Positions 1 through 46,700 of a stretch of 64,000 nucleotides of DNA are shown one piece after another (within the stretch, counting starts at the first letter, position 1; every line of letters begins with the position of its first letter). The notes under the pieces are model-generated. The model searched no databases. It was not told the origin of the DNA and saw only the letters and a list, made by a program, of their open reading frames with translations. Origin of the DNA: Macrostomum lignano (lineage: Eukaryota); assembly GCA_002269645.1 (NCBI GenBank), contig NIVC01001451.1:124001-188000 (forward strand), read 5' to 3'. Position numbers and translations under genes: made by a program.

Positions 1-159
1 CACGGGTGCTGGAAGGACACACACGGGTGCTGGAAGGACACACACGGGTGCTGGAAGGACACACACGGGTGCTGGAAGGACACACGGGTGCTGGAAGGAC
101 ACACACGGGTGCTGGAAGGACACACACGGGTGCTGGAAGGACACACAGGTGCTGGAAGG
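1..159. repeat. Minisatellite, 19-21 bp unit GGGTGCTGGAAGGAC(AC)n, left part of an array interrupted by a LINE
   Basis: Direct tandem copies visible; the same unit resumes at 4928 after the LINE. Confidence 0.95.
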
Positions 160-1050
160 CTTCAAAAAGTGTGGAGTGCTGTTGACTCCTATCTGATTGA
201 GCTGACTGTCGAGGAGGGAATCTCCATCGGCGTTGAGCGGATGGTGCTGCGAAGCACATTCGTTCTTATTGCTCCTAGCAGCGAGGAGGACGCTCGGCGG
301 CTGCTCCAGCGGCTACCGACGGTCTCCTTGGATGCTGACCTTGGTGGAGCTCTTTTTCTTCGCGAGGGCCAGCGTCCAAAGACGATACCCTATGTGGTTT
401 TCGTCCCTGCTAAGAGCACCGCAGCTGGACCAGACGTTATTCGCCGGGTCCTACTGCGTCTGAACCCCGACCTCCCTGCTAGTGGACTGGTGTATCACCG
501 CAAAGTCCGCAGGGGGGAGACGGGCAACTCAATTGTCCTCGGCCTTTCCAGCACTTGGGCGAGTCGGTACCCTAATGGATCCTCTTTCCAGCTGGGTGCC
601 CTCAAGCTCAAGTTGCGCCGAGGAAAGTCTGCCAAAGGGAAGGCTACTGCCAACCCCGGCATCTCCGGCAAGAGCGGGGCGCAGTCTAAGGCCCAAGGAA
701 AGGCGCAAGCCGATCCCAAAGCCAAAGCTGCATCTCGCCCCTCTGCTAGCAGCAGTTCGGCGACCGCGGTAACGGCTCCGGCCGAGCCCCGGGAACCAAA
801 CCTGCCAGTCGGAGAAGGAGTTGAGGACGAGGCCGGGTCTTCGGAATCCGAGCTCTCCTCGGCCACCTTGGTGGGGTCTGAAGGTAAAGATGCAGGTGAG
901 GAAGCTTCCTCCATCCTGTCATCGGAGCCTGAGGACTCTGCTGGGGGGGCCGGTGGGGGTGAGGAGGCCATGGACGTCGACCAACTCCCATCTCCCAGTC
1001 AAGCCCCAGCGGCCTGGGACGAGGACGATCTGTTGTCCAAGTCTCCTTGA
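160..1050 (+). pseudogene. LINE family A ORF1, 3' part (5'-truncated)
   Basis: Open frame homologous to ORF1 of the second LINE (LNPDLPASGLVYHRKVRRGETGNSIVLGL vs RHPDLDASGLVYHSTVRKGTTGATVILGL); acidic low-complexity C-terminus ending LLSKSP. Confidence 0.8.
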
Positions 1051-1089
1051 TGGCCCTGGGCTCTAGCCAGATATTGCATTTAATACAGT

Positions 1090-4000
1090 ATGACTAAGCT
1101 CCACGCTGCCAAAGGAGCGACATTCTGTCTGCAAATAAATTTACAGCATTGCGTATCTGCGTCAGTAAATCTGATGAAGATTGCTGAGCTGTACAGGCCA
1201 GGCCTCATCCTGATCCAGGAACCCTGGATGCGCAACGGTAAGTTGCCCAACATTCCCTCTGGCTACTCTGATTTTTATGTGTGTGGCCCGGGGAACAGCC
1301 GCCCTAGAGCGGCTATCCTCGCTGCTAGCCATCTCCAGGCTTGGCTGAGGACTGATCTCTCTGATGGAGACCTTTGCGTCATCCAATCTAATCATTTCTC
1401 TCCGCGTACGTGTCTTGTTGCCTCGGTTTATATCCCAGGCGACAGAGACCCTGCTCCCGAGAGTTTACTGCGCCTTGCGCAGTACTGCGAGTCCCAGAAC
1501 GCTGAGCTGTGCTTAGGGGGCGACCTCAACGCGCACCACAAGCACTGGGGCAGCAAAGATACCAACACTAGAGGAGAGGAGCTTCTGGCCCTCATCTCTA
1601 ACACAAACCTCATGCTCTGCAACCGCGGCAGCACTCCTACCTTTAATAATGGCAGATGGACCGAGGTCCTCGACGCCACACTCGTTACCCCAAGACTCTT
1701 TGACAGAGTCAAGGAGTGGAGAGTCTGGTCTGAGGAGCCCTCCCTGTCTGACCACTGCTTTATCGCCTTTAATATCGCGGACACTAAAACCCAGTCTCCG
1801 ATCACTTGGAGACGCAATATCCGCAACACTGATTGGGCGGCCTACAAGGCTGCCCTTGATCTGCACCTGCAGGAACTCACGGACTTACGTCCGATTGAGA
1901 CCTGCGAGGATGTGGATCATATGGCTGAGACGCTGACAGGTTGCATTATTGCAGCCTACGAAGCGGCTTGTCCTGCTCGCGCCTACAGAGGCAAGACCTC
2001 GGCGCCGTGGTGGAACCCGGAGCTGGGGAAACTCAGGCGGAAGGCCAAAAGCCTTCATCGCCGTGCCATGAAGACCGGAAACCCGGAGGACATGGAGCTT
2101 TTCCGGCAAGCCTCCCGCAATTTCAAATCTGAAGTGCGCAAGGCCAAGGAATGTAAGTGGCGCCAATTCTGAAATGAATTGGATCAAGACAGACCTACTT
2201 CTAGGCTTGTCAAGGCCCTTACAATGGACAAAATGTCCAAATTAGCCATGATAAAAAAAGATGATGGCTCTCTTACTAAAGACCCTGAAGAAGTGCTTCA
2301 GCATATGCTTAGCACATTCTTCCCGAGGGTACCTACTGCTAGACCGGAGCCCAACCATTCGATGGATGGAGCCACCCTAGCGGCGGGCATTGTCACTGAA
2401 GACCTAATCGCTCGTGCGGTCAGAACCTTCAAACCCTTCAAATCTCCTGGACCTGATGGTATCTACCCTGTTCTCCTTCGTGAAGCAGCCAAGATACCCT
2501 CGTTCCTGAGACTCACCCGCAATCTTATGCGGGCCTCTATCCAGCTGGGATACGTTCCCAAAAGCTGGACTGAAGCTCGAGTAGTCTTTATTCCCAAACC
2601 TGGGAAGGGTGACTACCAAAGCGTCAAGGCCTTCCGGCCAATTAGCTTAACGTCAGCAATGCTTAAGCTCACTGAGAGGCTTATTCTCTGGCGGCTGCTC
2701 TCCTGCGAGCTGACAGCGATGCCCCTCAGCAATAATCAGCACGCCTTCCGTACCGGGAGGTCGACTGACAGCGCCCTGCATGCGATTGTCGAAAAGATTG
2801 AACGGGCGGTACTGGGTGACGGTTACGCCCTGGCTCTCTTTCTTGACATTGTTGGCGCCTTCGACAACGTTATCTTTGAAGCGTTTCAGAGGGCCCTTCA
2901 AAATCGCAAAGCTCATGCTACCCTCATACGGTGGATCATGTACATGATCTCCAACCGTACGGTCACTGCCCAACTTCTTGGGCAAACTGCCTCCACCAGA
3001 GTCTGTAAGGGTGGACCCCAAGGCGGAGTCCTCACCCCGACGCTCTGGAACCTGGTCATGGACGCTCTTCTGAGTGACTCCCGACCTGACCCTGTCTTCA
3101 AAGTCGGGTATGCTGATGACGTCACGGCCATTGTGGCAGGACCGTCTCCCAGCACGCTCAGGGATCTGATGCAGAGCTTTATCCGCAAAGCAGAATCCTG
3201 GGCCAATGACAATGGTTTGGAACTCTCTGAGCCCAAAACCGTTGCCATTATGTTTACCAGCAGACTACGCTGGAACATACGTCCTCTGCAGCTCTACGGC
3301 AGAGATATTGCCTTCGCGCACCAGACCAGATGTCTCGGGGTCACACTTGACCACCGGCTCAACTGGTCCTTCCACGTGAAAGCAAAAGCTAAGCGTGCCT
3401 CAGCCATCCTGGCCCAGCTCCGACGAGCACTTGGCACTTCTTGGGGTCTATCCCCAAAGCGGCTTTGGTGGATCTATACTTCCGTAGTTAGACCTGCCAT
3501 TACGTACGCCTCTGTTGTCTGGGTTAGCGCTACCCAGGTCAAAAGCCATGCAGACCTGCTCAACACGATCCAAGGCAGAGCGTGTAGGCTCATCTGCAAC
3601 GCCACCAGGTCCACGCCCTTTGCTGGCATGGGGGCCTTTCTTAATCTTCCGCCTCTTGACCTCTTCATCAGGGGTGAGGCGGCTAGAACGACGCGGCGTC
3701 TAATTGATGCCGGCGTCAAATTCATTTACATGAGAGCACCTGCTAAGCGGAACCTTGTCCCGCATAGCGATCTGTGCCTCAACTTTCTCAACGAGTGTCA
3801 GGCCAATCGCGTCTTCACCGATGGCATTGCCTCAACGCTCAACCTGAGACAGCGCTACTCCGTAGCTATCGACTCGCGCGATAACATCAATGACCATTGG
3901 AACCCTGGTGAGCTTCATTGCTACACCGACGGTTCTAAGCAGTCAGCCAACACCGGCTTTGGTGTTGGAATCTTTCTGAACGGGAGGGTCATCGCTACCC

Positions 4001-4830
4001 ACGCTCAATACACTGGGGTCAACTCCAGTGTTTTCCAAAATGAAGTTCTGGCCATCAGCTCCTGCACTGCAGAGCTTCTCGCCACTGGCGTTACTGGTAA
4101 GAACATCATTTTCCATTCGGACAGCCAAGCTGCCTTGCACGCCATCAGTGGCTGCAGCACCAACTCTGCTACAGTCCTTGACTGTATCAAACTCCTCAAT
4201 GTGTTGGGTTCCGCCAACAAAATTACCCTTAAGTGGGTTCCGGGGCATGTGGGGATCCGAGGAAATGAGTTGGCTGACACCCTTGCAAAAGTTGGTGCCT
4301 CCGGCTCCTCTCTCGGCCCCGAACCTCTTGTCCCGATTCCTGGCTGTGTCATCGACTCGCGCATCAAAGCGTGGATCAGGACTCAGCACCGCTCGACTTG
4401 GGCGAACCGCACGAACTGCAGGCAATCCAGAGGCGCTGTCCCTCAGCCCTCTCACCAGCTCCGGAAGCTCCTCTTGCGCCTCTCGCGCAGAGACATCCGG
4501 GCTGCCACCATGACCCTCTCTGGTCACGGCTGCTTCTCCAGGCACCAGTACCTGCAGGGCAACGCCACCAACGCCTCCTGTAGTTTCTGCAACTCAGGTG
4601 ACGAAACCGCTGAGCATTTCGTCAGCATCTGTCCCGCCTTCACGCGGGCCAGACTCACTTACCTCGGGCCACACACATCTATTACTGAAGCGTGCAAACC
4701 CGAAAACTTTAATCAGCTCATGCGCTACCTTCGGGCCACCCGCAGGGCTGAACTCTCCTTTCCAGAGAGCACCATAGCTGCTGGCGACACTGGGGGACCT
4801 CCCTGGGCGGCGCCAACCCTCCGTCCATAG
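1090..4830 (+). pseudogene. LINE family A ORF2 (endonuclease/reverse transcriptase/RNase H) with one in-frame nonsense codon
   Basis: ORFs 1090-2172 and 2179-4830 are in the same frame. TGA at 2170-2172 in WRQF*NEL aligns to WREYCEEL of family B, implying a TGC/TGT-to-TGA change. Confidence 0.9.
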
Positions 4831-21000: not shown

Positions 21001-23991
21001 ATCTGGGAGGCTGGCCTAGCAACTGAGGATCTGGGAGGCTGGCCTAGCAACTGAGGATCCGGGAGGCTTGGCCCGGCAACTGAGGATCTGGGAGGCTGGC
21101 CTAGCAACTGAGGATCTGGGAGGCTGGCCTAGCAACTGAGGATCTGGGAGGCTGGCCTAGCAACTGAGGATCCGGGAGGCTTGGCCCGGCAACTGAGGAT
21201 CTGGGAGGCTGGCCTAGCAACTGAGGATCTGGGAGGCTGGCCTAGCAACTGAGGATCTGGGAGGCTGGCCTAGCAACTGAGGATCTGGGAGGCTGGCCTA
21301 GTAACTGAGGATCCGGGAGGCTTGGCCCGGCAACTGAGGATCTGGGAGGCTGGCCTAGCAACTGAGGATCTGGGAGGCTGGCCTAGCAACTGAGGATCTG
21401 GGAGGCTGGCCTAGCAACTGAGGATCTGGGAGGCTGGCCTAGCAACTGAGGATCCGGGAGGCTTGGCCCGGCAACTGAGGATCTGGGAGGCTGGCCTAGC
21501 AACTGAGGATCTGGGAGGCTGGCCTAGCAACTGAGGATCTGGGAGGCTGGCCTAGCAACTGAGGATCTGGGAGGCTGGCCTAGCAACTGAGGATCTGGGA
21601 GGCTGGCCTAGCAACTGAGGATCTGGGAGGCTGGCCTAGCAACTGAGGATCCGGGAGGCTTGGCCCGGCAACTGAGGATCTGGGAGGCTGGCCTAGCAAC
21701 TGAGGATCTGGGAGGCTGGCCTAGCAACTGAGGATCTGGGAGACTGGCCCAGCAACTGAGGATCTGGGAGGCTGGCCTAGCAACTGAGGATCTGGGAGGC
21801 TGGCCTAGCGACTGAGAATCTGGGAGGCTGGCCTAGCGACTGAGGATCTGGGAGCCTGGCCTAGCAACTGAGGATCTGGGAGGCTGGCCTAGCAACTGAG
21901 GATCTGGGAGGCTGGCCTAGCAACTGAGGATCTGGGAGGCTGGCCTAGCAACTGAGGATCTGGGAGGCTGGCCTAGCAACTGAGGATCTGGGAGGCTGGC
22001 CCAGCAACTGAGGATTTGGCGAGCAAGGCGCACAGTGATATCGCAGCGGCTCACCCGAAGTGCGCATCAAAGTACTCCTTCTGCTGCCTGGCAGTGCTGT
22101 CTGGAGCGCTCCACAGGTCCACAGGGTCGGTGGTGACCTGGAAGCGGATGATGCCGCAGCTGAGGCCCAGGCAGGCCAGCAACCCAAGCGTGAGCACCAG
22201 CACGGGGTGCCCGGCCACCGCCCGACCCCAGGCCGCAAACACGGATTCAATTCGCCGATCAAAGCCGGCGCACAGCCTCTCGGACTCGGCACCAGACGAT
22301 GATGAAAAAGAATTCGACGACTTGGCGCCAGCAACCAGAGCGGCCTCGGAGCGGCTGAGCGGCTGGTGGGTCTGGTGCGGCAGGAAGCACTCCCGGCTGC
22401 TCGGCGAAGTCATGCCGAAGGTCACGCCGTTCGGACAGCTGTCCGAGGTGGCCGCAGCGGAGGCGGCTGCAGCTTCGGCGGCCGCCGCATCGGCTGGATC
22501 ATCAGCGATCAGTTCGTTATCGACGGCAACGGCGGCTGCGGCGGTGGCATCGTCGACAACGTCGCGCTGATGACGCATCGGCGAAGACGAGGACTTTTTC
22601 GACGGAGGCGAGTAGACGTGGAAGTACAGGTTGGAGGCGGCGAATGCCACAATGAAGGCCGCATAGGCAATGGCCAGGCAGATGTACCAGACGCTGATGC
22701 CGAGAACTCGCCAGGTGTTGGAGGAGCCGCTGCTCTGCAGTGCAGCCAAATCGTTGTCGAATCCGGCGGAAGCTGCGGAACACACGGCCGGACAGTCGAT
22801 GCAGGAGCAGGCCGACTGGCCGTTGAATCCGGTCTGGCAGGGCACCACCTTGGCGTTCATGCCGCACATGTCAGCTGCAGTGGTTGTCTTAGTAGTCATT
22901 GTGGTTTGTGTTGTCACAGTTGATTTGTTACTGCCAGCACTGGAATCTGCATTGGTGACAGGAGTTTTACTAACAACGCTGGTTGGAGTGGCGCCACTGC
23001 GACCATCGGCGGTCTGGGGCAGCGCAGTCGTCACCGGATTAAGGTCAAAGTCGCCAAAGTCAAATTCGCTATCAACAGACCGTCGAGTCCTGCCTGGTTG
23101 GTCCTGAGCGGCGCAGGCGTTGTCTGTGACGTGGAATTTAGTCACGAACGGTGCGTACGGGTTTATGGCGGGACTTCCCAGAAAGTTGAACACATCCGTG
23201 ACTTTGCAATCCTCAGCTGGCACAGGGGTGCACAGACTGCCGATAGCTTTGCCATTGCCCATTGTGACACTTTTGCAGCTGTTGAACATGCCCTCGGCAA
23301 ACTGCCGACTCACTGTGTAGTCAATTCGCAGCACTCCCTTACTAGCTGGGTCGGTCTCAACTACGCGCAGGAACTCGTGCTGCCGCGGTGAGCAAGCGTA
23401 CTGGCAGTAGAGGGTGCGGAAGTTGCGCCAGCAGCTCGGGCAGCGCTTGAACAGCATGCCAGCATTGCCGATGCCAGCGCTGAGTGACAGGACCTGGCTG
23501 GCTGAGCAGCACAGCTGCGGATGCCCATCTGGTCCGCGCATGCGGCTGTCCAGCATCTCTGGGCACAGTTGAGCCAGGGTGTTGAGTGCACTGGAGTTTG
23601 TCAGAGGCTGGGGTGGCCCACTGTACTTGCAGTTGAGTGGCTTGCCTGTTTCTGGATGCCGGCCGCATTCATTGTGCCAAACACAACTGGCAGCAACCTG
23701 AGATGGATAATTTATGAAATTTTGTTATAACCAGCCCAAAAACTAAAATATGTCAGAGCAAAAATAAATTTTAAGAAAAGCTTACCAATTGAACAGAGGT
23801 GGCAAGGAATAAACTAATTGTCAAAATGGTTTTCATCTGAAATAGGAAACATATAGTTATAAAAACTAGCAACTTTAATAAACATAAGAAACATAAAAAC
23901 TAAAATTGGTTAGTGCTTTAGAACTTAGATTAAAATCCATTACTAATATACATGCGCAACTGCTGGCCAACCTAGCCGATCCGGCCACCAT
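10770..23991 (-). CDS. NPC1: Niemann-Pick C1-like lysosomal cholesterol transporter (spliced, about 1480 aa)
   Basis: Exons (minus strand): 23944-23991 (tentative signal-peptide exon [16 protein letters not shown]), 22055-23697 (NTD: CVWHNECG...[16 protein letters not shown]; TDPVDLWS), 18805-19087 ([10 protein letters not shown]), 16903-17201, 15381-15992 (sterol-sensing domain: [17 protein letters not shown]), 13004-14192 ([20 protein letters not shown]), 12054-12330 ([16 protein letters not shown]), 10770-10864 (GPSLRR...ELLDEV*). All GT/AG with matching phases; total 4446 nt. Only the first exon is uncertain. Confidence 0.93.
10921..11277. repeat. 20 bp minisatellite GATCCCCATCAGTCCGCCAT (NPC1 last intron)
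   Basis: Tandem copies visible. Confidence 0.95.
11790..12045. repeat. (CTGT)n microsatellite (NPC1 last intron)
   Basis: Tandem copies visible up to the donor at 12053. Confidence 0.95.
12430..12945. repeat. 21 bp minisatellite CTCCTAATCTCACCTTTCGCT and variants (NPC1 intron)
   Basis: Tandem copies visible. Confidence 0.93.
14305..15305. repeat. ~24 bp CCCCTGTAACATACCCCTGAAATA array followed by a degenerate ATACCCTAGAAT array (NPC1 intron)
   Basis: Tandem copies visible. Confidence 0.9.
16013..16866. repeat. 33 bp minisatellite TTCTCATGCCTGCATTTCTCATCTGTCTGTTCT (NPC1 intron)
   Basis: Tandem copies visible. Confidence 0.95.
17255..18797. repeat. 20 bp minisatellite GAGAGTGACAATCTCAAATC with higher-order blocks (NPC1 intron)
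   Basis: Tandem copies; a multi-unit variant block recurs at about 17330, 17730 and 18210. Confidence 0.93.
19122..19820. repeat. 20 bp minisatellite GAGATTTGTAATCTAAGAGT (NPC1 intron)
   Basis: Tandem copies visible. Confidence 0.95.
20990..22018. repeat. 28 bp minisatellite GCAACTGAGGATCTGGGAGGCTGGCCTA (NPC1 intron)
   Basis: Highly homogeneous tandem copies. Confidence 0.95.
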
Positions 23992-34700: not shown

Positions 34701-37700
34701 TTGGAGTCGCCCGTGATCAAGTCGCCATTTTGTGCGAATGTTAAGCAGAGAACAAATTTTGGCTTCTCGTGTTTCTGCGCGAAATATTGGTTATAAAAGC
34801 AGTTATCAATTTATTCTCGCTCGAGTCAGAACTGTTTCTATTGGCTAGGAACTCGACGTTTACCTAGAACTGTTCCTATTGGCTGAGAAATCATTCCTGA
34901 GCTAGAGCTGTTCCTATTGGCTGGAAAGTCGACCTTGAGCTAGAACCTTTCTATTGGCTGAGAAATAATCCCTGAGCTAGAACTGTTCCAATTGGCTAAG
35001 AAATCATCCCTCGGCTAGAGCTGTTCCTATTGGCTGAGAAGTCGACCTTCAGCTAGAACTGTTCTTATTGGCTGAGAAATCATCCCTGAGCTGTTCCACT
35101 GTTCCAATTGGCTGCTAATGCGATCGATCTTCAAGTACAAACAGTTTATAGCCTAACAAAAACTCAAAAAAGCGAGAAGAAACATGCGACTGTTTTGTGT
35201 TTTACCTCAAAAATTCCATTCTTCTTAGACAGCTGACCGCCCTCTATAGTCCAGAAGGTGAGCTGGTTCTTGCCGCAGGTCACAATACTGCCATTATCTA
35301 ACGGGTGGTACTCGCAGGCTAGCACAGGATCGCCAGAAGTCTTTGTCTCGGCCAGCTTGTGCGGCTTGCGCCAGTCCCAAACGGAGATCATGTGCTCGTT
35401 GGACTCGTCTACGGCGCAGAGAAAATTGCCGCCGTCGGCTCGGCTGAAGGCCAGGCAGCACACGGCCCGCTCGAAGTCTCCGAGGCCGAGCACGTGCATG
35501 GTGGTCAGGTCCACGCTGTTCCACACTCGGACGTGTGGCTGCCGGAATCCGAGCAGTTGTTGAGGGGTTGGTGAGTCTCATTGTATGATGCCTCATTAGG
35601 TAAGTATTGTACATCAGAGTCGCACTTGATAATTACATTAAGGATTGACTCAATGCATCAGCACACCAATGACTCAATGCATCAGCACACCAATGACTCA
35701 ATGCATCAGCACACCAATGACTCAATGCATCAGCACACCAATGACTCAATGCATCAGCACACCAATGACTCAATGCATCAGCACACCAATGACTCAATGC
35801 ATCAGCACACCAATGACTCAATGCATCAGCACACCAATGACTCAATGCATCAGCACACCAATGACTCAATGCATCAGCACACCAATGACTCATGGATCAG
35901 CACACCAATGACTCATAGATCAGCACACCAATGACTCAATGCATCAGCACACTAATGACTCATAGATCAGCACACCAATGACTCAATGCATCAGCACACT
36001 AATGACTCAATGCATCAGCACACTAATGACTCAATGCATCAGCACACCAATGACTCATGGATCAGCACACCAATGACTCATGGATCAGCACACCAATGAC
36101 TCAATGCATCAGCACACCAATGACTCATGGATCAGCACACCAATGACTCATGCATCAGCACACCAATGACTCATGGATCAGCACACCAATGACTCATGGA
36201 TCAGCACACTAATGACTCAATGCATCAGCACACCAATGACTCATGGATCAGCACACCAATGACTCATAGATCAGCACACCAATGACTCAATGCATCAGCA
36301 CACCAATGACTCAATGCATCAGCAAACTAATGACTCAATGCATCAGCACACCAATGACTCAATGCATCAGCACACCAATGACTCATGGATCAGCACACCA
36401 ATGACTCATGGATCAGCACACCAATGACTCAATGCATCAGCACACCAATGACTCATGGATCAGCACACCAATGACTCATGGATCAGCACACCAATGACTC
36501 ATAGATCAGCACACCAATGACTCAATGCATCAGCACACCAATGACTCAATGCATCAGCACACTAATGACTCAATGCATCAGCACACTAATGACTCAATGC
36601 ATCAGCACACCAATGACTCAATGCATCAGCACACCAATGACTCATGGATCAGCACACCAATGACTCATGGATCAGCACACCAATGACTCATGCATCAGCA
36701 CACCAATGACTCATGGATCAGCACACCAATGACTCATGGATCAGCACACCAATGACTCATGGATCAGCACACCAATGACTCATGGATCAGCACACCAATG
36801 ACTCAATGCATCAGCACACCAATGACTCAATGCATCAGCACACCAATGACTCATGGATCAGCACACCAATGACTCAATGCATCAGCACACCAATGACTCA
36901 ATGCATCAGCACACCAATGACTCATGGATCAGCACACCAATGACTCAATGCATCAGCACACCAATGACTCAATGCATCAGCACACCAATGACTCATGGAT
37001 CAGCACACCAATGACTCATGGATCAGCACACCAATGACTCAATGCATCAGCACACCAATGACTCAATGCATCAGCACACCAATGACTCAATGCATCAGCA
37101 CACCAATGACTCAATGGAATAAGTTATAAATGGCAAAAACGAATCCGAATATTTGAGACGCTACATGCTGCAAATTCAGGAAAATAGGTTTATTAACAAG
37201 CCTAAATATTGTTTTATAGGACGGTGCGAACTTTTGACATATTTGGTGCCGCTTTTACAGAACCGCTGAGCATACACAGGTGTTATCAGCTATCTCTAGA
37301 GCAATATCGGCGCCATCTCTAGAGCAATATCGGCGCCATCTCTAAGAAAAGATCGGCGCCATCTCTTAGACAATATCGGCGCCATCTCTAAGACAATATA
37401 GGCGCCATCTCTAAGAAAAGATCGGCGCCATCTCTAAGACAATATCGGCACCATCTCTAGAGCAATATCGGCGCAATTCCTAGGGCAATATCGGCGTCAT
37501 CTCTAGAGCAATATCGGCGCCATCTCTATGGCAATATCGGCGTCATCTCTAAGACACTATCGGCGCCATCTTTAAGGCAATATCGGCGCCATCTCTAGAG
37601 CATTATCGGTGCCATCTCTAAGACACTATCGGCGTCATCTCTAGAGCAATATCGGCGAAGGCAATATCGGCGCCATGTCTAGGGCAATATCGGCGCCATG

Positions 37701-40700
37701 TCTAGGGCAATATCGGCGCCATGTCTAGGGCAATATCGGCGCCATGTCTAGAGCAATATCGGCGTCATCTCTAGAGCAATATCGGCGCCATGTCTAGGGC
37801 AATATCGGCGTCATCTCTAGAGCAATATCGGCGCCAGCTCTAGAGCAATATCGGCGCCATCTCCACGCGACTGCTATAAATATGATAAGTAAAATGTCTA
37901 ATTTTCTGTGCAAGATTAGGCTAACCTAAGAGTGCAAAATATGTTTTCAGAACTTTAGCATGCTGGATTCTCTTCTTTTTGGCTAGAAGAGAAAGACTCC
38001 AAAGCAGGCACACTTTAAGTTACTAAGATGGTACATTTCCAAGATGCTATGATGGTTAATTGCTATTCTTAAAGGTACAAACCGAACATTGCCAAGCGGT
38101 GCTCAGTGCGTCAAATTTCTGTCTCAAACTGAATGCCAAACTCGCACGCGAAGGCGTATTCAGCATGCCAGTGAAGTATGAGACAGACTAGGCCTACGAG
38201 CTAAGGTCTGCGATGCTTCACGCCTGCCCCCATCTTCAGCAGGTCAAGGCTGGTGGGAGGTCTGCACCCTCTATTTGCCTCTGGCAGCCGCAGACTCCCC
38301 CACGCTGTCTCGCAAGTCGACCCAGGGGTACTCGTCCCCGCGTGTGTTCAAGGCAGACCCTAGGGCTGCTGGACAGACTGGGCTCCGGCGCTGGCGACCC
38401 TATCCAGTGGCTTCGGCCGAATTTGGGTATGCGGGTCTGGCTCACCAGCCTGCAGGCCGTGGTACTGCTTAACGTACCCTCTAATGCCTAAGGTGTTTGA
38501 CCGTGCCGATGGGCTGGAAGGCCGGGGAGTAGTCCGGTCGCTAGCGGTCCTTTTTTCAAACCGGCTGGCTTGAGGTGTCGGCCAGTCGGGTACTCAACTC
38601 GCATAACGAGTAGCCCTCCCCCGCTTTTCAGCTATGGCCACTAACGCCACCATCCCTAAAGAAACTGACCCGGTCGCCTCTGGCTCACCGGGATCAGCCG
38701 CTCCGGTAGCTACCACTGGTAGCACCAACGCCCAACCTGGTCCAACCGGGCCAGCTGACGCTGCCGCCGATCACCCTGGCCGCCAGTCTAGCCGACCGCG
38801 CACGGCCGAGTCTCGACGACAGCGGAACATCCGCCGCAACCGTAAGCGGCAGGAGAAGCGGGCTGCTGCTGCGTCTGAGGAGGGCACGCAAGCCGCGGTG
38901 AGGCCTTCGGGAGCCACCGCAGCGGGGAGGCCCTCTGGGGAGTCCGGTGGCGCGGCTGGGCCGTCAGGAACCGCCGTGTCCTCGGGCTCTCAGGGGGCAA
39001 CCCTGCCGGCCTACCGCCTTCCAAAGACAAAGCGGCCCCGCTCAAGACCTCCGAGTCCTACGCGTCCAAGGTCAAGCAGCCGCTGCAACCCGCCGTGATG
39101 ATCCTCGGCGGGGATTTCGACCTGACGCCCGAGCAGCTCGACGTCGCGTGGCGTACCATCGACGAGGGCTTGCTCAATCTAACCCTGGAGGGCGTCTTCG
39201 TGGACATCGTCAAGTCCACCAAGGCGAACGGGTGCATCCTACTGTGGTGCAAATCCGAGGAGAGCACCCAGCTCCTGCGGGATCAGCTGCCCAAGTTCGA
39301 CTGGCACAGCGACCTGGGCCAGCTGACCTTCGCCTTGGAGAGCGAGCGGCCGAAGACCATCCGCCATCGGATTTGGGTCCCGGCCGACAGTGCAATCAAG
39401 TCCGGGGAGCAGCTGCGGCAGCTCCTGCTCAAGCGGCACCCGGATCTCGACGCCAGTGGTCTTGTGTACCACAGCACGGTCCGCAAGGGCACGACCGGGG
39501 CCACAGTCATCCTCGGCCTGACGGAGGGATGGGCCAAGCGGCTACCGCACGGCACAAACCTCCACCTTGGTCTCCATCAACTGACCATCCTCCGCTGTGA
39601 GGAGGGCAAGGTGGAGACCAAGAAAGACGGGAAGCGCGCCGCTCCCGGAGCTGGGGCTCATGCCCCGCCGGCCAAGCGGCAGCAGCAACCCGATCCCGAG
39701 CCTAACAAGGCTATTCGCGCTGCTGAGTCCGCCTCGCGCGGACGTAGACCCGCCCGCAGTAGCCGGCGGTCCGGTCTAATCCAGCGCGCACTTGACGAAG
39801 CTCAGTCTCTGAGACTTCACCTCGAGCAGACTCGTGCCGCTCGAAAAAACACTGAAAGCCAGCCGAGGGAACTGGACGACGGCACGGCTCAGCCTTCCAA
39901 CTGGTGGGATTACCACCAGGAGGACGCTGCCGGCCGAGCTCAGACTCCCGACGGCGGGGCGCAAGGCGAAGGCAGCAGCCGTACCCCAGTCGCTGGGGAG
40001 GAGGGCGGTGTAGCGCGGCTAGGTGACTCACCTGCCGTGGGCGCCGTGTCCGCCTCCGCGGCGGCTGGGGAGGCGGCTGAGCCTGAGCCAATGGAAATTG
40101 GCGACTCAACTCTCACCGATGAGGCTGAGAATGAGTTGCTTTTCTCCTCCCCTGGACAGTAGACATGACTGTCTCCCAGGGCATCCACTGCTTGCAGGTC
40201 AACCTGCAGCACAGCATTGCTGCTTCAGTCAACCTCTTGAAGCACACTGACCAATACGTGCCAGGGATTATCCTTATCCAGGAACCTTGGACGCTTAGGG
40301 GCAGCCCCCAACATGTCCCCACCGGCTACCAGTGTTTAACCGCTGGTACCCGGGAGGGAAACCTGGCACCAAGATCCTGCATCATGGTGTCCAGTTCTAT
40401 TAACGCATGGCTCAGATCAGACCTGTCCACCAGGGACATCTGTGTCATCCAGTCTGAAGACATACTCCCTGGGAGGACTACCCTCATCGCCTCGGTTTAC
40501 CTACCGGGCGACGGCGAGATGATCCCAGTAGAGCTTGTCACACTGGTCGAGCTCTGCTCCACCAGAAACTATGAGCTGCTCGTGGCAGGTGACATCAATG
40601 CCCACCACACCCACTGGGGCAGTTCTGATATAAACCAGAGAGGTGAAGACTTCCTGGCTTATATTGCTACTACAACCCTTGAGTTCTGTAACTCGGGTAG

Positions 40701-43700
40701 TACCCCTACCTTCAATAACGGACGCCGATCGGAGGTGCTGGATGCCACCCTCGCCACGCCCAGGCTCTTCCAGAGCACTAGGGAATGGCGGGTGCTTCCT
40801 GAGGCGTCCCTCTCCGATCACAAGTTCATCTCTTTCACGCTGGCCAGCGCCCGTAACGCAGGCCAGCTTTACTGGAAACGGAATGCTAGGAATACCGACT
40901 GGACCGCCTTCAGGCTTGCCCTGGAGGAGACCTATCGTTGCACTAGCGCTCCAGTCTCCATCAACACCTGCGAAGAAGCAGATGAATTTGCGGCCGCACT
41001 TACGGACTCGCTCACTGCTGCCTTCGAAGCCTCATGCCCACTAAAGGCATATAAAGGCAAACAGTCGGCCCCATGGTGGAACCCGCAGCTTGGCGACCTC
41101 CGTCGCAGAGCCAAAAGGCTTCACCGCAGGGCCCAAAAAACTAAAAACCCGGCCGACCAAACCGCCTACCTGAACTCTATCCACGAGTTCAAGAGGCAGG
41201 TTAGGAACGCCAAAACCAACAAGTGGCGCGAATACTGTGAGGAACTTGAGGGCTCCCGCCCCACCTCCAGAATCGTTAAAGCCCTCACCCTGGACAAAAT
41301 GTCCAAACTCTCCTCAGTCAAGAGAGCCGACGGCTCGCTCACTGAGAACCCAGGAGAAACACTGGAAGCGATGCTAACAGCGTTTTTCCCGAACGAGCCA
41401 GCTAGGCCCGGCCCCCCTGACCACTCAGTGGGCGGACACGTACTGGCTGACTCAATCATCACGGAGGACCGCGTTACTAAAGCTGTCTCCTCCTTCAAAC
41501 CCTTCAAATCCCCAGGACCGGACGGCGTTGTGCCAGCCTTCCTGCGGGAGGCGGTGAAATGCACCGGTTTCCTGCGGAACCTTTGCCGGCTTCTGAAAGC
41601 CTGCATTGTGCTCGGCTTTGTTCCGAAATCCTGGACCGAGGCCAAGGTGGTCTTTATCCCCAAGCCTGGCCGACCGGACTACCGGTCCATTAAATCCTTC
41701 AGACCAATTAGCCTCACCTCCTCATTGGTGAAGCTGTTAGAGAGACTGGTGCTCTGGCGCCTCCTCTCTGTGGAACTGAAGAACAAGCCGCTCAGTGAGA
41801 ACCAGCATGCCTTTCGGGCAGGCAGGTCCACGGAGAGCGCGCTTCACGTTCTGGTTGACATGCTGGAGAAAGCCGTTCTTGGTAATGGCTACGCTCTCGC
41901 TGTCTTCCTCGACATTGTTGGAGCCTTCGATAATGTCCTCTTTGAGGCCTTTGACAGAGCTCTACGTGCTAGAGGAACCCACTCGCACCTCACCCGGTGG
42001 ATCATGTATATGATCAGCCACCGTACTGCCACCGCACACCTGTTGGGCCACCAACGGACGGTAACCGTCTGCAAAGGCAGCCCCCAGGGCGGTGTCCTCT
42101 CTCCAGTTCTCTGGAACATGGTCATCGATGAGCTCCTCCAGGACAGCCATCTTGACCCCATCCTCAAGGTCGGTTACGCCGATGATGTCACAGCCGTGGC
42201 ATCCGGACCGTCACCTGAAACCTTAGAGATCTTTTGCAAAACTTCATTCGCTCTGCTGAACGTTGGGCGGACAGGTGCGGCCTCAGGCTCTCCGAGACCA
42301 AAACTGTCGCGATCATGTTCACCAGCAGGGTAAACTGGCGTATTCGCCCACTAAAGCTTTACGGGGTGGAAATTCCATCCTGCAAGCAAACCAAGTGTCT
42401 CGGCGTTACGCTGGACCACCGGCTGAGCTGGTCCACCCACGTCCAGGCCAAAACCAAAAAAGCCCTCGCGATTCTTGCGCAGCTGCGCAGAGCCGTCGGC
42501 ACCACCTGGGGCCTCACCCCAAAGCGTCTCTGGTGGATCTATACCGCAATGGTCCGACCGGCCGTTACATACGCCGGCCTGGTCTGGACCAGCGCCTTGC
42601 AGATTAAAACCTGCCACGAAGCCCTCAAAAAGGTGCAGGGACGTGCGTGCCGCATGATCCTGAATGCCCCGCTCTCTGCTCCCTTTGACGGCCTCAACGC
42701 CTTTCTCTGCCTCCCGCCTCTGGACATCTTTGTCCGTCGCGAGGCTGCTAAAACCACCCGCCGGCTCATCGAGGCTGGTGTTAGCTTCAAGCCACAAAGA
42801 GCGATGGCGAAGCGCAAGCTCCTGCCGCACTCTGACCTGTGCCTTAAAGTTCTGGAGGAGAGTGGGAGTGCGGCTGTCCTTTCGGACGCTGAACCGCGCT
42901 CCCTCAACCTCTACCAACGCTTCAAGGTCACGATCCCCTCCAGGGAGAACGCCAACGACAGCTGGGCCCCTCAGGAGGTTCACTGCTTCACTGACGGATC
43001 CTCCAAAGACGGTTTATCCGGCTTTGGAGTCTGCATCCTTATCAACGGCCGCGTGATTGCTACTCACGCCCAACACACTGGCAGACTCTCCAGCGTCTTC
43101 CAGAATGAAGTCCTTGCCATCAGCTCCTGTGCAGCTGAGCTCCACCGCAAGGACTTCAAGGACAGAAGAATCTTCTTCCACTCTGACAGCCAGGCCGCTT
43201 TACAGGCCCTGTGTCACACCACTACGAACTCCCGAACAGTCCGCGACTGTATCGGGCAGCTCAACAAGCTGGCTCGGAGGAACACCGTCCGGCTCACGTG
43301 GATCCCAGGACACGCCGGCTTCAAAGGTAACGAGCTCGCCGACTCCCTCGCTAAGGCGGGCTGTTCCGGCTCGCCCCTTGGCCCCGTGCCCCTGGCCCCC
43401 ATCCCCGCCACAGTCATTAATCGTCAGATTAACGACTGGGCGGACATCCTGCACTTGCGCAGATGGGATGGTATCTCCAACTGCCGCCAATCTCGTGCGG
43501 CAGTGCCCAATCCGTCCCTCAAGCTGCGGAGAATCCTTTTGAATCAAAATCGAAAAGATATCCGCGCTCTCACTATGACCTTCACAGGTCACGGTTGCTT
43601 TGCCAGGCACTGCTTCCTCCGATGTGTTCGCCGGAGTGAACTCTGCCCCTTCTGCAGCCTCGAGAATGAAGATGCCATGCACTTCGTCTGCTACTGCCCG

Positions 43701-46700
43701 GCCTTCAACCGAGACCGGCTCAACCACCTCGGGCCCAACCCGTCCCTGGACGACGTTTGCCGGCCCGAGAACATCCCACGGCTCATCCGGTTCCTCCGGG
43801 CCACCAAGCGAGCCTCCGTCTTCCCCACCGAAGACAACGCTGCAGACAGGACCGGCAGACCTCCCTGACCGGCCCCGCGCCCTAGCCTATGCGGGTCTTT
43901 CAGGGATTAGCGGAATGGGCGACGCTCGCCTCCCCGCTGCGTCTTCGGACCGCCCTGCAGCTAAGTCAAGTAAGTCAAGAATGCCAAACTCTGAGCAGAA
44001 AAAATAAGAAAAATGCTTTTTAAACTCTAAATTTATTTGTCAATGCCGATATAGAGGGGTGCTTCTCAGGTATATAAGGGCGAGTCTCGGGTAGATAAGG
44101 GCGAGTCTCAGGTAGATAAGGGCGAGTCTCAGGTAGATAAGGGCAAGTCTCAGGTAGATAAGGGCGACTCTCAGGAAGATAAGGGAGACTCTCAGGAAGG
44201 GCGACTCTCAGGAAGGGCGACACTCGGGTAGATAAGGGCGATTCTCAGGTAGATAAGGGCGACTCTCAGGAAGGGCGACTCTCGGGTAGATAAGGGCGAC
44301 TCTCAGGAAGGGCGACTCTCGGGTAGATAAGGGCGACTCTCAGGTAGGGCGACTCTCAGGTAGATAAGGGTGATTCTCAGGTAGATAAGGGCGACTCTTA
44401 GGTAGATAAGGGCGACTCTCAGGTAGATAAGGGCGACTCTCGGGTAGATAAGGGCGACTCTCAGGTAGATAAGGGCGACTCTCAGGTAGATAAGGGCGAC
44501 TCTCAGGTAGATAAGGGCGACTCTCAGGTAGATAAGGGCGACCCTCGGGCAATTTAATAGGTCGCTTAGCATTTGTTACAAAGAAAAACCACAACATACA
44601 AATACAGTATAGAATCGATCAAGAACAGAACAAACGCAAAAAATATTATTAGCAGCCAGCCTCACCTTGCCCTGAGCCTTATCGTGCCCAGCCACCTGTC
44701 CGGTTGCTATAGTGATCTTGTCCGGATGAACGGCAATGCATTTAACGTCGTCATTGTGGCCAGTATAGTGCCTCTGCATGCCCTCTTCAACGTTGTGAAG
44801 CACGACCACGCTGGCTATGAAGTAGACCATCTCGCCGGTGGGCAGAGAGTACAAGTTGGAGCGGCAGTCCCGGCCGCGGTAGCCGTAGGCCCACTCCAGT
44901 TTGAGCTTCTCCGCGGGCGGCTCGGCCGGCTCAACTTGTTGAACGTCGCGAAGCTGCTCAACAAGATCCGATGGAGCGTACAGATTCAAAGGCCGGCCGC
45001 GCAGGTGCATTCGGATGACGCCGTCCTCTGATAGTTTTTTGTTGAGTAGCAGCATAATGAACAATAAAATGCTCAAGTTTTTCTTTTTATATGCCCAACG
45101 TAAGAGTAATAGAATTTCATACGAATAAAATAAAAATAATTAAATTGAATTAAGTACTCTACTCATAGTAGAAATATAAGAAATTACTTGATACAGAAAC
45201 AATAAAACCGCCTGCAAATGTACTGTAGTATCTACTATTAGTAACAATATTAGTTTTCTTTTCATTTTGGTGTTTATAAAAGTCACTCACCTTTTGACCA
45301 GACCGACTCCTTGACACTGGAAATTTGTTTGAAGGTTGGTTGGAATTGAGGTTAGTGATGATCGAAAAAATTTGCACGGATTAAGTAAAGTATTTTATAA
45401 TATGGATTTAATCATTATGAAGTACCATATAAAAATTTCAAGAGATTTTGATTTCTGGAATGTGATAAAGCATCATGAAGATCCTGAAGTATCATGAAGG
45501 TCCTGAAGCATCATGAAGGTCCTGAAGTATCATGAAGGTCCTGAAGTATCATGAAGGTCCTGAAGCATCATGAAGGTCCTGAAGTATCATGAAGGTCCTG
45601 AAGCATCATGAAGGTTCTGAAGCATCATGAAGATCCTGAAGTATCATGAAGGTCCTGAAGTATCATGAAGGTCATGAAGCATCATGAAGGTTCTGAAGCA
45701 TCATGAAGGATCTGAAGCATCATGAAGGTTGATGCACCATGAAGGTCCTGAAGCATTATGAAGGTCCTGAAGCATCATGAAGGTTCTGAAGCATCATGAA
45801 GGATCTGAAGCATCATGAAGGTTGATGCACCATGAAGGTCCTGAAGCATTATGAAGGTCCTGAAGCATTATGAAGGTCCTGAAGCATCAAAGGTCCTGAA
45901 GCATCATGAAGGTCCTGAAGCATCATGAAGGTCCTGAAGCATCATGAAGGTTCTGAAGCATTATGAAGGTCCTGAAGCATCAAAGGTCCTGAAGCATCAT
46001 GAAGGTCCTGAAGCATCATGAAGGTTCTGAAGCATTATGAAGGTCCTGAAGCATCATGAAGACCCTGAAGCATCATGAAGGTCCTGAAGCATCATGAAGG
46101 TCCTGAAGCATCAAAGGTCCTGAAGCATCATGAAGGTCCTGAAGCATCATGAAGATCCTGAAGTATCATGAAGGTCCTGAAGCATCATGAATGTTCTGAA
46201 GCATCATGAAGGTTCTGAAGCATCATTTAGGTCCTGAAGGTACTGTACTGAAGTAGGATGACTGAATAGCATCAAGTTTCATAAAGATAATGAAGTATGA
46301 ATCACCATAAAGTTCTTAAATGCCAGAAGTGCGAGCTAATCATTAATATTAATAATCTTGTAATAAGCATTACTAGAAATTAATGCCAGAATTTGATAAA
46401 AATCAGTAAGCAGAAAACTGACTATATAATTTTTACGCCAGAATAAACTCGACTAAGAGTCCTAATGCAATTTGAAAGCATCTACACTACGAGTATAGCA
46501 GACAATCCTAAATATTACCAACCGTTGCTTAGCAACCGGCTTAGCCAACGATTTCCCAGCATAACCGCCAACAGTGGGTATGCATAGCAGTGAATTGGTT
46601 CGAACCGACAATTGCTGGCTGGCATAACGAATAGGGCAGCAAAGTTACTTCAAAATTTAAGGAATTCAACTTTGTTAAGATCAACTAAAAAAGTACGAAA

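Follow-up and report, generated by a model that had tools for sequence, protein, structure and literature searches.

Our analysis indicates that positions 38144-38389 on the forward strand of the 64,000-nucleotide stretch of Macrostomum lignano DNA studied here (the window) very probably encode an HDV-like self-cleaving ribozyme, in sense orientation within a 5.8-kb LINE. The fold lies exactly at the terminus of the element, is statistically significant and is conserved with compensatory changes. This was also the central reading of the original prediction, and it is backed by descriptor statistics, the boundary set by the TSD, compensation and the 5' terminus in the close relative L001, ribozyme cores in three distant relatives and published precedent.

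The LINE and its predicted ribozyme core

The LINE is 5,835 bp long, carries ORF1 and an APE-RT-RNase H ORF2, and is bounded by a perfect 13-bp TSD. The 5' copy of the TSD, GAATGCCAAACTC (38131-38143, +), is repeated exactly at 43979-43991 (+). Because these 13 bp are exact at both ends, G38144 is the first base of the element. ORF1 (38634-40162, +) has no Pfam domain and shows a frame change between the frame of the ATG at 38634 and the homologous part that begins at 39017. ORF2 (40165-43868, +) contains Pfam domains for the APE endonuclease, reverse transcriptase and RNase H, and is frameshifted at about 42219-42225, as seen by tblastn with the L001 ORF2, which gave 60-61% identity in two frames. 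The 3' UTR (43869-43978, +) ends in a short tandem tail (TAAGTCAAG x2), and both the UTR and the tail motif are conserved in L001. The description of this copy as full-length therefore stands for its two complete termini but not for its ORFs; since both of these are frameshifted, the copy is not an autonomous source element. In the flanks of the insertion only minisatellites were seen, with no host gene or upstream transcription unit. The predicted ribozyme lies on the same strand as ORF1 and ORF2, and G1 of P1 directly follows the TSD, so that the predicted cut site coincides with the 5' terminus of the LINE, as originally proposed.

All helices and junctions of an HDV-like ribozyme are present in these 246 nt (38144-38389, +) in the canonical order P1-(J1/2)-P2-P3-L3-P3'-P1'-J1/4(P1.1)-P4-J4/2-P2', which makes two nested pseudoknots whose strands are fully paired, and contiguous where required. 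The 5' strand of P1 (GCACGCG, 38144-38150) pairs at seven of seven positions with the 3' strand (CGCGUGU, 38339-38345), G1 forming a wobble with U38345 and the predicted scissile bond lying 5' of G38144. P2 is built from 38316-38325 and 38378-38389, the latter being the 3' edge of the ribozyme. Its core CCCAG (38321-25) pairs with CUGGG (38378-82) and its extension GUCG (38316-19) with CGGC (38386-89), giving 4 + 5 bp with an unpaired A38320 on the 5' strand and an internal loop, CUC, on the 3' strand. P3 (38326-38338) consists of 3 bp, GGG (38326-28) with CCC (38336-38), and encloses L3 (UACUCGU, 38329-38335). Positions 2-3 of L3 (AC) are the 5' strand of P1.1, and J1/4 (GU, 38346-38347) is its 3' strand, with the pairs A38330-U38347 and C38331-G38346. 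Within the P4 hairpin (38348-38373), folding places the core stem at 38353-59/38364-69, preceded by a UCAA junction. J4/2 (CAGA, 38374-38377) follows directly 3' of P4, and its first base, C38374, is the predicted catalytic cytosine, in agreement with the first position of J4/2 being the place of this base across the HDV-like family (PMC10879173). In folding, the nested parts were the minimum-energy or near-minimum-energy structure, and P1, P2, P3, L3, P1.1, P4 and J4/2 were each found where the original prediction had placed them.

A strict descriptor was used, consisting of G1, a 7-bp P1, a 3-bp Watson-Crick P3, L3 of the form U...CG.(.), a 2-bp P1.1, a P2 of at least 5 bp and J4/2 C-N-R-A. 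It gave one match on both strands of the 64-kb window (128 kb), namely the site at 38144. Over 300 dinucleotide shuffles the mean was 0.017 matches per window and 0.004 per GC-rich element, and the chance of a strict match starting at one given base is about 1e-7. When the catalytic C was replaced by A, G or U in the descriptor, these decoys found 0 matches in 521 kb, where the C version found 2. Few bases are conserved among HDV-like ribozymes, and loosely drawn descriptors therefore yield many false positives (PMC4870747); here, relaxed descriptors (any L3, 6-bp P1) returned mostly noise and no further convincing ribozymes. Rfam gave no ribozyme match in the window at the gathering threshold, nor in 38000-38700 at E<=10. 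The Rfam models of this family (HDV_ribozyme, CPEB3, drz-Agam and HDV-F-prausnitzii) leave room for only about 10 nt in J1/2, and neither P2 nor P1.1 is encoded in them. The miss is to be expected because the J1/2 insert measures 165-170 nt, and it is still a negative result.

Conservation in related elements and the J1/2 domain

The covariation analysis rests on two sequences, the window element and L001, its sole close relative with DNA, which is 60% identical in ORF2 and 47% in the 5' UTR. The L001 contig (ERR14788467) starts exactly at the homologous G1 and extends about 530 nt beyond the 3' end. This start shows where the terminus is, not that cleavage occurs, and it answers, for the one relative with a 5' end, the earlier question of whether full-length copies begin at G1. 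The 5'-end comparison left out P0002 (56% identity, protein only) as well as L002 (P0003) and window copy B, which are 5'-truncated. A protein search based on ORF1 found only L001 and one Macrostomum lignano model as family members. A metagenome scan with the ORF2 alignment gave 80 loci, none of which exceeded 38% identity or belonged to the same family, and exact-pattern scans of genome_contigs and viral_contigs for the conserved J1/2 block found no match.

Pairing is maintained in L001 while the bases change. Six of the seven P1 pairs are kept, two of them by compensatory change, and both pairs of P1.1 are compensatory, AC/GU in the window having become CU/AG. The P2 core keeps 5/5 pairs (one compensatory) and its extension 4/4, and P3 is unchanged; P1, P1.1 and P2 together have five compensatory pairs and one broken pair. 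In the control drawn from the same UTR, only 3/110 chance stems of at least 7 bp and 7/410 chance 5-bp stems matched the conservation of the real ones, and when partners were slid, 25-42% of positions were paired versus 98% observed. P4 of L001 is longer (9-11 bp) and lies at the same place, after GCAA. J4/2 is CUGC in L001 versus CAGA in the window, and since its last position is without the usual A, the activity of the L001 variant is uncertain.

The J1/2 ('P1.2') domain of 165 nt (38151-38315, +) has closing helices at 38154-56/38311-13 and 38161-64/38304-07 and a branched interior, with linkers of 3 nt on the P1 side and 2 nt (AA, 38314-15) on the P2 side. A closed multibranch J1/2 is common to the minimum-energy folds of the window element and L001, and the closing helix, which reaches 9 bp in L001, keeps 3/3 pairs, one by compensatory change. 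The most conserved block of the 5' UTR is a hairpin inside this domain (38175-38222, +; stems 38175-79/38213-17 and 38184-89/38205-10). It is 77% identical to L001, as against 47% for the whole UTR and 47-52% for the catalytic core, and retains 11/11 pairs with two compensatory changes. The earlier proposal that J1/2 is itself structured was borne out for a GC-rich hairpin (about 38253-38303), which occurs at the same place in L001, but not for a helix between AGGCGU (38152-57) and ACGCCU (38220-25); the letters of this helix are present, but it is absent from the minimum-energy fold and four of its six pairs are broken in L001. Folding models predict J1/2 as a closed branched domain with short linkers, adjoining an extended P2. 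By analogy with drz-Agam-2, such a domain would keep P1 and P2 together, which would make both folding and cleavage faster.

It is possible, if rather doubtful, that the 246-nt ribozyme is a composite regulatory 5' end and more than a cutter. The hairpin at 38175-38222 could be a second module, that is, a binding site for an element protein, a translation element or an internal promoter; alternatively, cleavage could depend on it, as it does on part of J1/2 in silkmoth R2. The segments 38146-49 (P1 5' strand), 38154-57, 38310-13 and 38340-43 (P1 3' strand) are mutually complementary in both the window element and L001. They could allow the RNA to alternate between a cleaving fold, in which P1 and the closing helix of J1/2 form, and a 5' hairpin, 38146-49/38154-57, that does not cleave.

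Three distant metagenomic relatives, L008, L024 and L082 (31-34% identity in ORF2), each carry a canonical HDV-like core that lies upstream of the ORFs on the coding strand, according to structural tables built from explicit coordinates. They share with the window family the LINE superfamily, this position and the topology, and their P1 sequences are different and co-varying. Two of the three have J1/2 inserts of 150-160 nt. The bases U1, C5 and G6 of L3 are the same in the window element, L001 and all three. The distant cores have P3 ACC/GGU or GCC/GGC, L3 UCCACGU(U), P1.1 CC/GG and J4/2 G-C-N-A-A, whereas the window family differs in its P3, L3, P1.1 and J4/2 (GGG/CCC, UACUCGU, AC/GU and CAGA in the window element). 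For L024, in which J1/2 is short, the top Rfam matches were HDV-F-prausnitzii (25.7 bits, E 0.5) and drz-agam-1, which are sub-threshold and start at the predicted G1. TSDs around the ribozymes of these three relatives were not resolvable in their contigs.

Proposed mechanism and alternative explanations

Catalysis, the origin of transcription from upstream and any part played in translation are inferred. The transcript would fold into a nested double pseudoknot of P1/P1.1/P4 and P2/P3, with C38374 as general acid/base and an Mg2+ ion bound close to L3 and to the G1.U wobble, and self-cleavage would take place directly 5' of G38144. RNA entering from upstream, or from an imprecise start, would in this way be trimmed, so that any such transcript would begin at the first base of the element. 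The trimmed RNA would be the template for target-primed reverse transcription, and because this RNA is what would be copied, a complete insertion would start at G1 right after the TSD. The original prediction proposed that the element is released from read-through host transcripts and may use the structure for cap-independent translation (IRES); both may hold.

It is unlikely that an internal promoter starting at G1 mainly sets the 5' terminus, with the HDV-like fold as a back-up or additional module like L1Tc Pr77. In L1Tc, one 77-nt stretch at the start of the element comprises both an internal promoter and an HDV-like ribozyme (PMC3383444). The block at 38175-38222 is not part of the catalytic core and might act at the DNA level or bind protein, and the minisatellite surroundings of the insertion offer no visible upstream gene. 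However, cleavage alone accounts for the fold, the covariation and the register with the terminus, and the conserved block acts at the RNA level, because it is a hairpin with compensatory changes. We also consider the alternative of a relic, or of a structured 5' UTR without catalytic activity that derives from an HDV-like ancestor and now serves translation or protein binding. Every position of the strict descriptor is intact, the window element and L001 both terminate exactly at G1, compensation maintains P1 and P1.1, which are relevant only to the catalytic fold, and a TSD without mismatches speaks for a recent insertion. A relic is therefore quite improbable, although the J4/2 sequences of the window element and L001 depart from the G-C-N-A-A of the distant relatives, this copy has two frameshifts and Rfam is without a match.

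The original prediction also raised the possibility of a second J4/2-P2 module (CGAA-UUUGGGU, 38418-28) and of switching between this distal module and the proximal one (38374-82). The letters of the distal module are present and able to pair with ACCCAG (38320-25) in the window, but there is no co-variation with the P2 5' strand in L001. That strand is CUCAG(A) in L001, and only the proximal 3' strand has followed it (CUGAG); the distal site is unpaired there, with 3/6 pairs and gaps, and the conserved 4-bp helix brackets and extends the proximal P2. Such a two-fold switch is very improbable. The small number of conserved bases in HDV-like ribozymes, together with the noise from relaxed descriptors, might suggest a chance resemblance in GC-rich sequence. 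This is effectively refuted by the rarity of strict matches expected in a window or in a GC-rich element, by a match whose first base is the very one that the TSD fixes, by pairing kept with compensation in L001 and by decoys without a match.

Comparison with known ribozyme-terminated LINEs

The window ribozyme is a well-supported further case of a mechanism known from other LINEs (R2, R4, RTE, Baggins and L1Tc). It leaves the understanding of how ribozyme-terminated LINEs work unchanged, and adds a clean, terminus-exact example of a ribozyme-defined 5' end. It also gives an annotation rule for the true 5' end of this LINE family, a large HDV-like ribozyme from nature, with a J1/2 predicted to be branched, on which the 'pinch' model can be tested, and a candidate 5' module for self-processing. 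In the literature searched, no ribozyme-defined 5' end was described for the Macrostomum flatworm lineage or for this ORF1 + APE-RT-RNase H family; the flatworm cases met there are planarian R2, with HDV-like ribozymes, and Schistosoma LINEs, with twister ribozymes (PMC3774820, PMC8501958).

HDV-like ribozymes lie at the 5' ends of R2, R4, Dong, Baggins, L1Tc and RTE (PMC3774820, PMC6765202). The precedent named in the original prediction, HDV-like processing of non-LTR 5' ends with a large J1/2 in R2, agrees with these sources. In R2, which has such ribozymes in Drosophila, silkmoths and many animals, the ribozyme frees the element RNA from a co-transcript, the conserved core is L3/P3/P1.1 and P1 co-varies; J1/2 of silkmoth R2 measures 216-498 nt and is partly required for cleavage (PMC3774820). 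The window element is like R2 in having a sense-strand double-pseudoknot ribozyme with a large J1/2 at a non-LTR 5' end. R2, in contrast, has a single ORF and a restriction-like endonuclease, inserts site-specifically into 28S rDNA and often cuts upstream in the 28S, whereas the window element has ORF1 + APE-RT-RNase H, a 13-bp TSD, a non-rDNA site and a predicted cut at its own first base.

In drz-Agam-2 of Anopheles gambiae, a structured J1/2 (P1.2) with short linkers and a long P2 forms a 'pinch' that accelerates cleavage (PMC4908430). Both ribozymes are large and HDV-like, with a base-paired J1/2 (predicted in the window element), an extended P2 and an association with non-LTR elements (PMC6765202). 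Unlike the window element, drz-Agam-2 belongs to the RTE clade, without RNase H or an ORF1 of the window-element type, and the two ribozymes are without sequence similarity (no match in Rfam). P1.2 is a simple helix in drz-Agam-2 but a branched domain of about 160 nt here, and P2 is 12 bp there versus 4 + 5 bp with an internal loop here.

Baggins (LOA clade, Drosophila) and L1Tc (ingi clade, Trypanosoma cruzi) are APE-type LINEs like the window element, although they come from other hosts and families. Their clades also carry RNase H, as the window element does. In both, the RNA's 5' terminus is the ribozyme cleavage site (PMC3774820, PMC6765202, PMC3185411). At 77 nt L1TcRz is compact, and it shares sequence with an internal promoter, whereas the predicted ribozyme of the window element extends over 246 nt.

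LINE anatomy and surroundings

The element at window positions 38144-43978 (+) is a non-LTR retrotransposon of 5,835 bp, flanked on both sides by GAATGCCAAACTC, a perfect target-site duplication of 13 bp (38131-38143 and 43979-43991). It has a 490-nt 5' UTR, ORF1 (38634-40162, +) without Pfam domains, ORF2 (40165-43868, +) encoding an APE endonuclease, a reverse transcriptase and an RNase H, and a 110-nt 3' UTR with a short terminal tail of two tandem TAAGTCAAG units. A protein search with ORF2 found three proteins with more than 45% identity, all from Logan assemblies. One of these, L001 (contig of ERR14788467), has 60% ORF2 identity and intact ORF1 and ORF2, and is the only one of the three with DNA covering the 5' UTR. 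Named proteins more than 50% identical to the LINE are M. lignano models only. The description of the window copy as full-length held for its termini but not for its reading frames, since compared with L001 ORF1 shifts frame somewhere between its ATG (38634) and 39017, where homology begins, and ORF2 does so at about 42219-42225. This copy is complete at both termini but lacks coding competence.

The GC content of the LINE is about 60%, versus roughly 45% in its neighbourhood. Long minisatellite arrays lie on both sides (36001-37863, 44064-44546 and 45468-46000, with units of 23, 21 and 19 nt). A 3' UTR motif, …TTAGCGGAATGGGCG…CTGCAGCTAAGTCAA…, is conserved between the window (43869-43978) and L001 (5849-5963) and is likely a recognition structure for the LINE's own reverse transcriptase. 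At 88-4830 (+) lies a further, diverged copy belonging to this LINE group, with an ORF1 tail at 88-1050 and an ORF2 at 1090-4830 that has one in-frame stop near 2173-2178. Its ORF2 shows 57% amino acid identity to that of L001 and its DNA is about 65% identical to the studied LINE; its 5' end, with any ribozyme there, lies outside the window. A long open NPC1-like exon at 22051-23556 (-) contains the NPC1 N-terminal domain and shares 79% identity with a protein of Macrostomum lignano. Together with the M. lignano models that match the LINE, it makes a Macrostomum flatworm the probable host; the exon itself would fit either a species distinct from the M. lignano reference or a paralogue.

Predicted ribozyme core at the 5' end

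All parts of the nested double pseudoknot named in the original prediction are present in the sequence, on the (+) strand. P1 pairs GCACGCG (38144-38150) with CGCGUGU (38339-38345) in 7/7 pairs, including a G1.U wobble at the predicted cleavage position, and the P2 core pairs CCCAG (38321-38325) with CUGGG (38378-38382). P3 is GGG/CCC, L3 is UACUCGU, P1.1 is AC/GU, P4 is a hairpin at 38348-38373, and J4/2 is CAGA, with C38374, the predicted catalytic cytosine, as its first base. In folding predictions, the nested portions of this HDV-like structure came out at or near the minimum energy. P2 is extended across a small internal loop by GUCG (38316-38319) and CGGC (38386-38389), with 4/4 pairs kept in L001, and the predicted ribozyme therefore spans 38144-38389.

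A strict descriptor was built from general family features: G1, a perfect 7-bp P1, a 3-bp Watson-Crick P3, L3 of the form U...CG.(.), a 2-bp P1.1, a P2 no shorter than 5 bp and J4/2 of the form C-N-R-A. When both strands of the 64-kb window were scanned, it matched once, at 38144. Dinucleotide shuffles gave a chance expectation of 0.017 matches for each window and 0.004 for each GC-rich element, so that a match starting at one prescribed base would be of order 1e-7. Decoys in which A, G or U took the place of the catalytic C (an idea taken from PMC10879173) gave 0 matches in 521 kb, versus 2 with C. The Rfam search did not report the ribozyme site; its HDV-family models take only a short J1/2 and omit P2 and P1.1.

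Conservation of pairing and alternative folds

The very first base of the L001 contig is the homologue of G38144, as anticipated for other full-length copies, and this was seen in the one relative with 5' UTR DNA. The contig (1-6492) extends about 530 nt past the LINE 3' end, into flank that carries antisense ORFs. If ERR14788467 is RNA-seq, the contig would be a 5'-processed transcript with 3' read-through. The 5' UTRs of the window and L001 are only 47% identical, yet L001 has the same fold, with P1 GCCUGC/GCAGGC, P2 CUCAGA/UCUGAG, P3 GGG/CCC, L3 UCUCCGU and P1.1 CU/AG. Between the two, P1 keeps 6/7 pairs (two compensatory, G.U changed to G-C, one pair lost), P1.1 keeps 2/2 (both compensatory) and the P2 core 5/5 (one compensatory), with no other change in either, and P3 is unchanged (3/3, none compensatory). 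As a null, all chance stems in the window's 5' UTR were mapped onto L001: 3/110 stems of at least 7 bp equalled P1, and 7/410 5-bp stems were unbroken like P2. An automated count found 98% of cells paired and 6 compensatory pairs, falling to 25-42% and 0-1 when partners were slid. Helices 2-5 in this count were derived from both sequences; the helices predicted from the window by itself were P1 and P2 only.

The 165 nt separating P1 from the extended P2 are predicted to form the same closed, branched domain in the window and L001. A 3-nt linker leads into closing helices 38154-38156/38311-38313 (9 bp in L001) and 38161-38164/38304-38307, followed by several hairpins and a 2-nt AA linker. The helix AGGCGU/ACGCCU originally proposed for J1/2 is not in the predicted folds, and 4/6 of its pairs are broken in L001. 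Conservation within the 5' UTR is highest at 38175-38222 (77% versus 47% overall), a segment that forms a hairpin within J1/2 and is maintained through compensatory changes. This hairpin might bind protein, act as a promoter element or represent a part of J1/2 that cleavage requires.

A distal CGAA-UUUGGGU module had been suggested as a switch between two folds. Where the P2 5' strand is changed in L001, this module has no matching change, whereas the proximal strand changed along with it; switching through the distal module is not supported. The P1 5' strand (38146-38149) can also pair with 38154-38157, and this hairpin is kept in L001 with two compensatory changes. The segments 38146-38149, 38154-38157, 38310-38313 and 38340-38343 are mutually complementary in both sequences (ACGC/GCGU becoming CUGC/GCAG). 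Because the letters of this hairpin recur at 38310-38313 and in the P1 3' strand, a non-cleaving fold in which 38146-38149 pairs with 38154-38157 in place of the P1 3' strand is conceivable, and with two sequences compared it is only a lead.

Distant relatives and known systems

A metagenome scan yielded 80 loci of more distant relatives (29-38% identity). Canonical HDV-like cores were found in three of them, L008, L024 and L082 (ORF2 identity 31-34%), where they lie 5' of the ORFs and on the coding strand, which suggests that predicted ribozyme-capped 5' ends are recurrent in this APE-RT-RNase H LINE group. The cores lie at 45-288 (L008), 848-966 (L024) and 706-944 (L082), each beginning with G1, and have J1/2 of 160, 9 and 150 nt; large J1/2 inserts are common among the LINEs of this group with predicted ribozymes. 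All three have P3 of ACC/GGU or GCC/GGC, L3 of UCCACGU(U), P1.1 of CC/GG and a 7-bp P1 whose sequence differs from locus to locus. Their J4/2 is G-C-N-A-A, compared with CAGA in the window and CUGC, without the last A, in L001. This variant junction might reduce activity, above all in L001. For L024, with its short J1/2, the top matches among 4,227 Rfam families were HDV-F-prausnitzii (25.7 bits, E 0.5) and drz-agam-1, both below gathering and both beginning at the predicted G1.

The strict descriptor, the target-site duplication boundary and the compensatory pairs in L001 indicate that the main claim is real and was correctly interpreted: the 5' end of this LINE is a predicted HDV-like self-cleaving ribozyme, a further example of an established kind. 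In the literature that could be searched, no HDV-like LINE ribozyme came up for Macrostomum or for non-R2 flatworm LINEs, and the ribozyme reported in Schistosoma LINEs is a twister (PMC8501958). For this LINE, freeing of the RNA from read-through transcripts of the host, like translation without a cap, would be an extrapolation from work on R2, RTE and L1Tc (PMC6765202); no upstream gene near the insertion is visible in the window. Established non-LTR elements with an HDV-like ribozyme cutting at the 5' end include R2, R4, Dong, Baggins, L1Tc and RTE (PMC3774820, PMC6765202, PMC3185411). The ribozyme predicted here shares their topology, position, strand and presumed role, but differs in host lineage, LINE family and core (P1.1 AC/GU, J4/2 CAGA), and has a branched 165-nt peripheral domain. 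Its J1/2 recalls silkmoth R2 ribozymes, in which J1/2 is 216-498 nt long and partly required for cleavage (PMC3774820).
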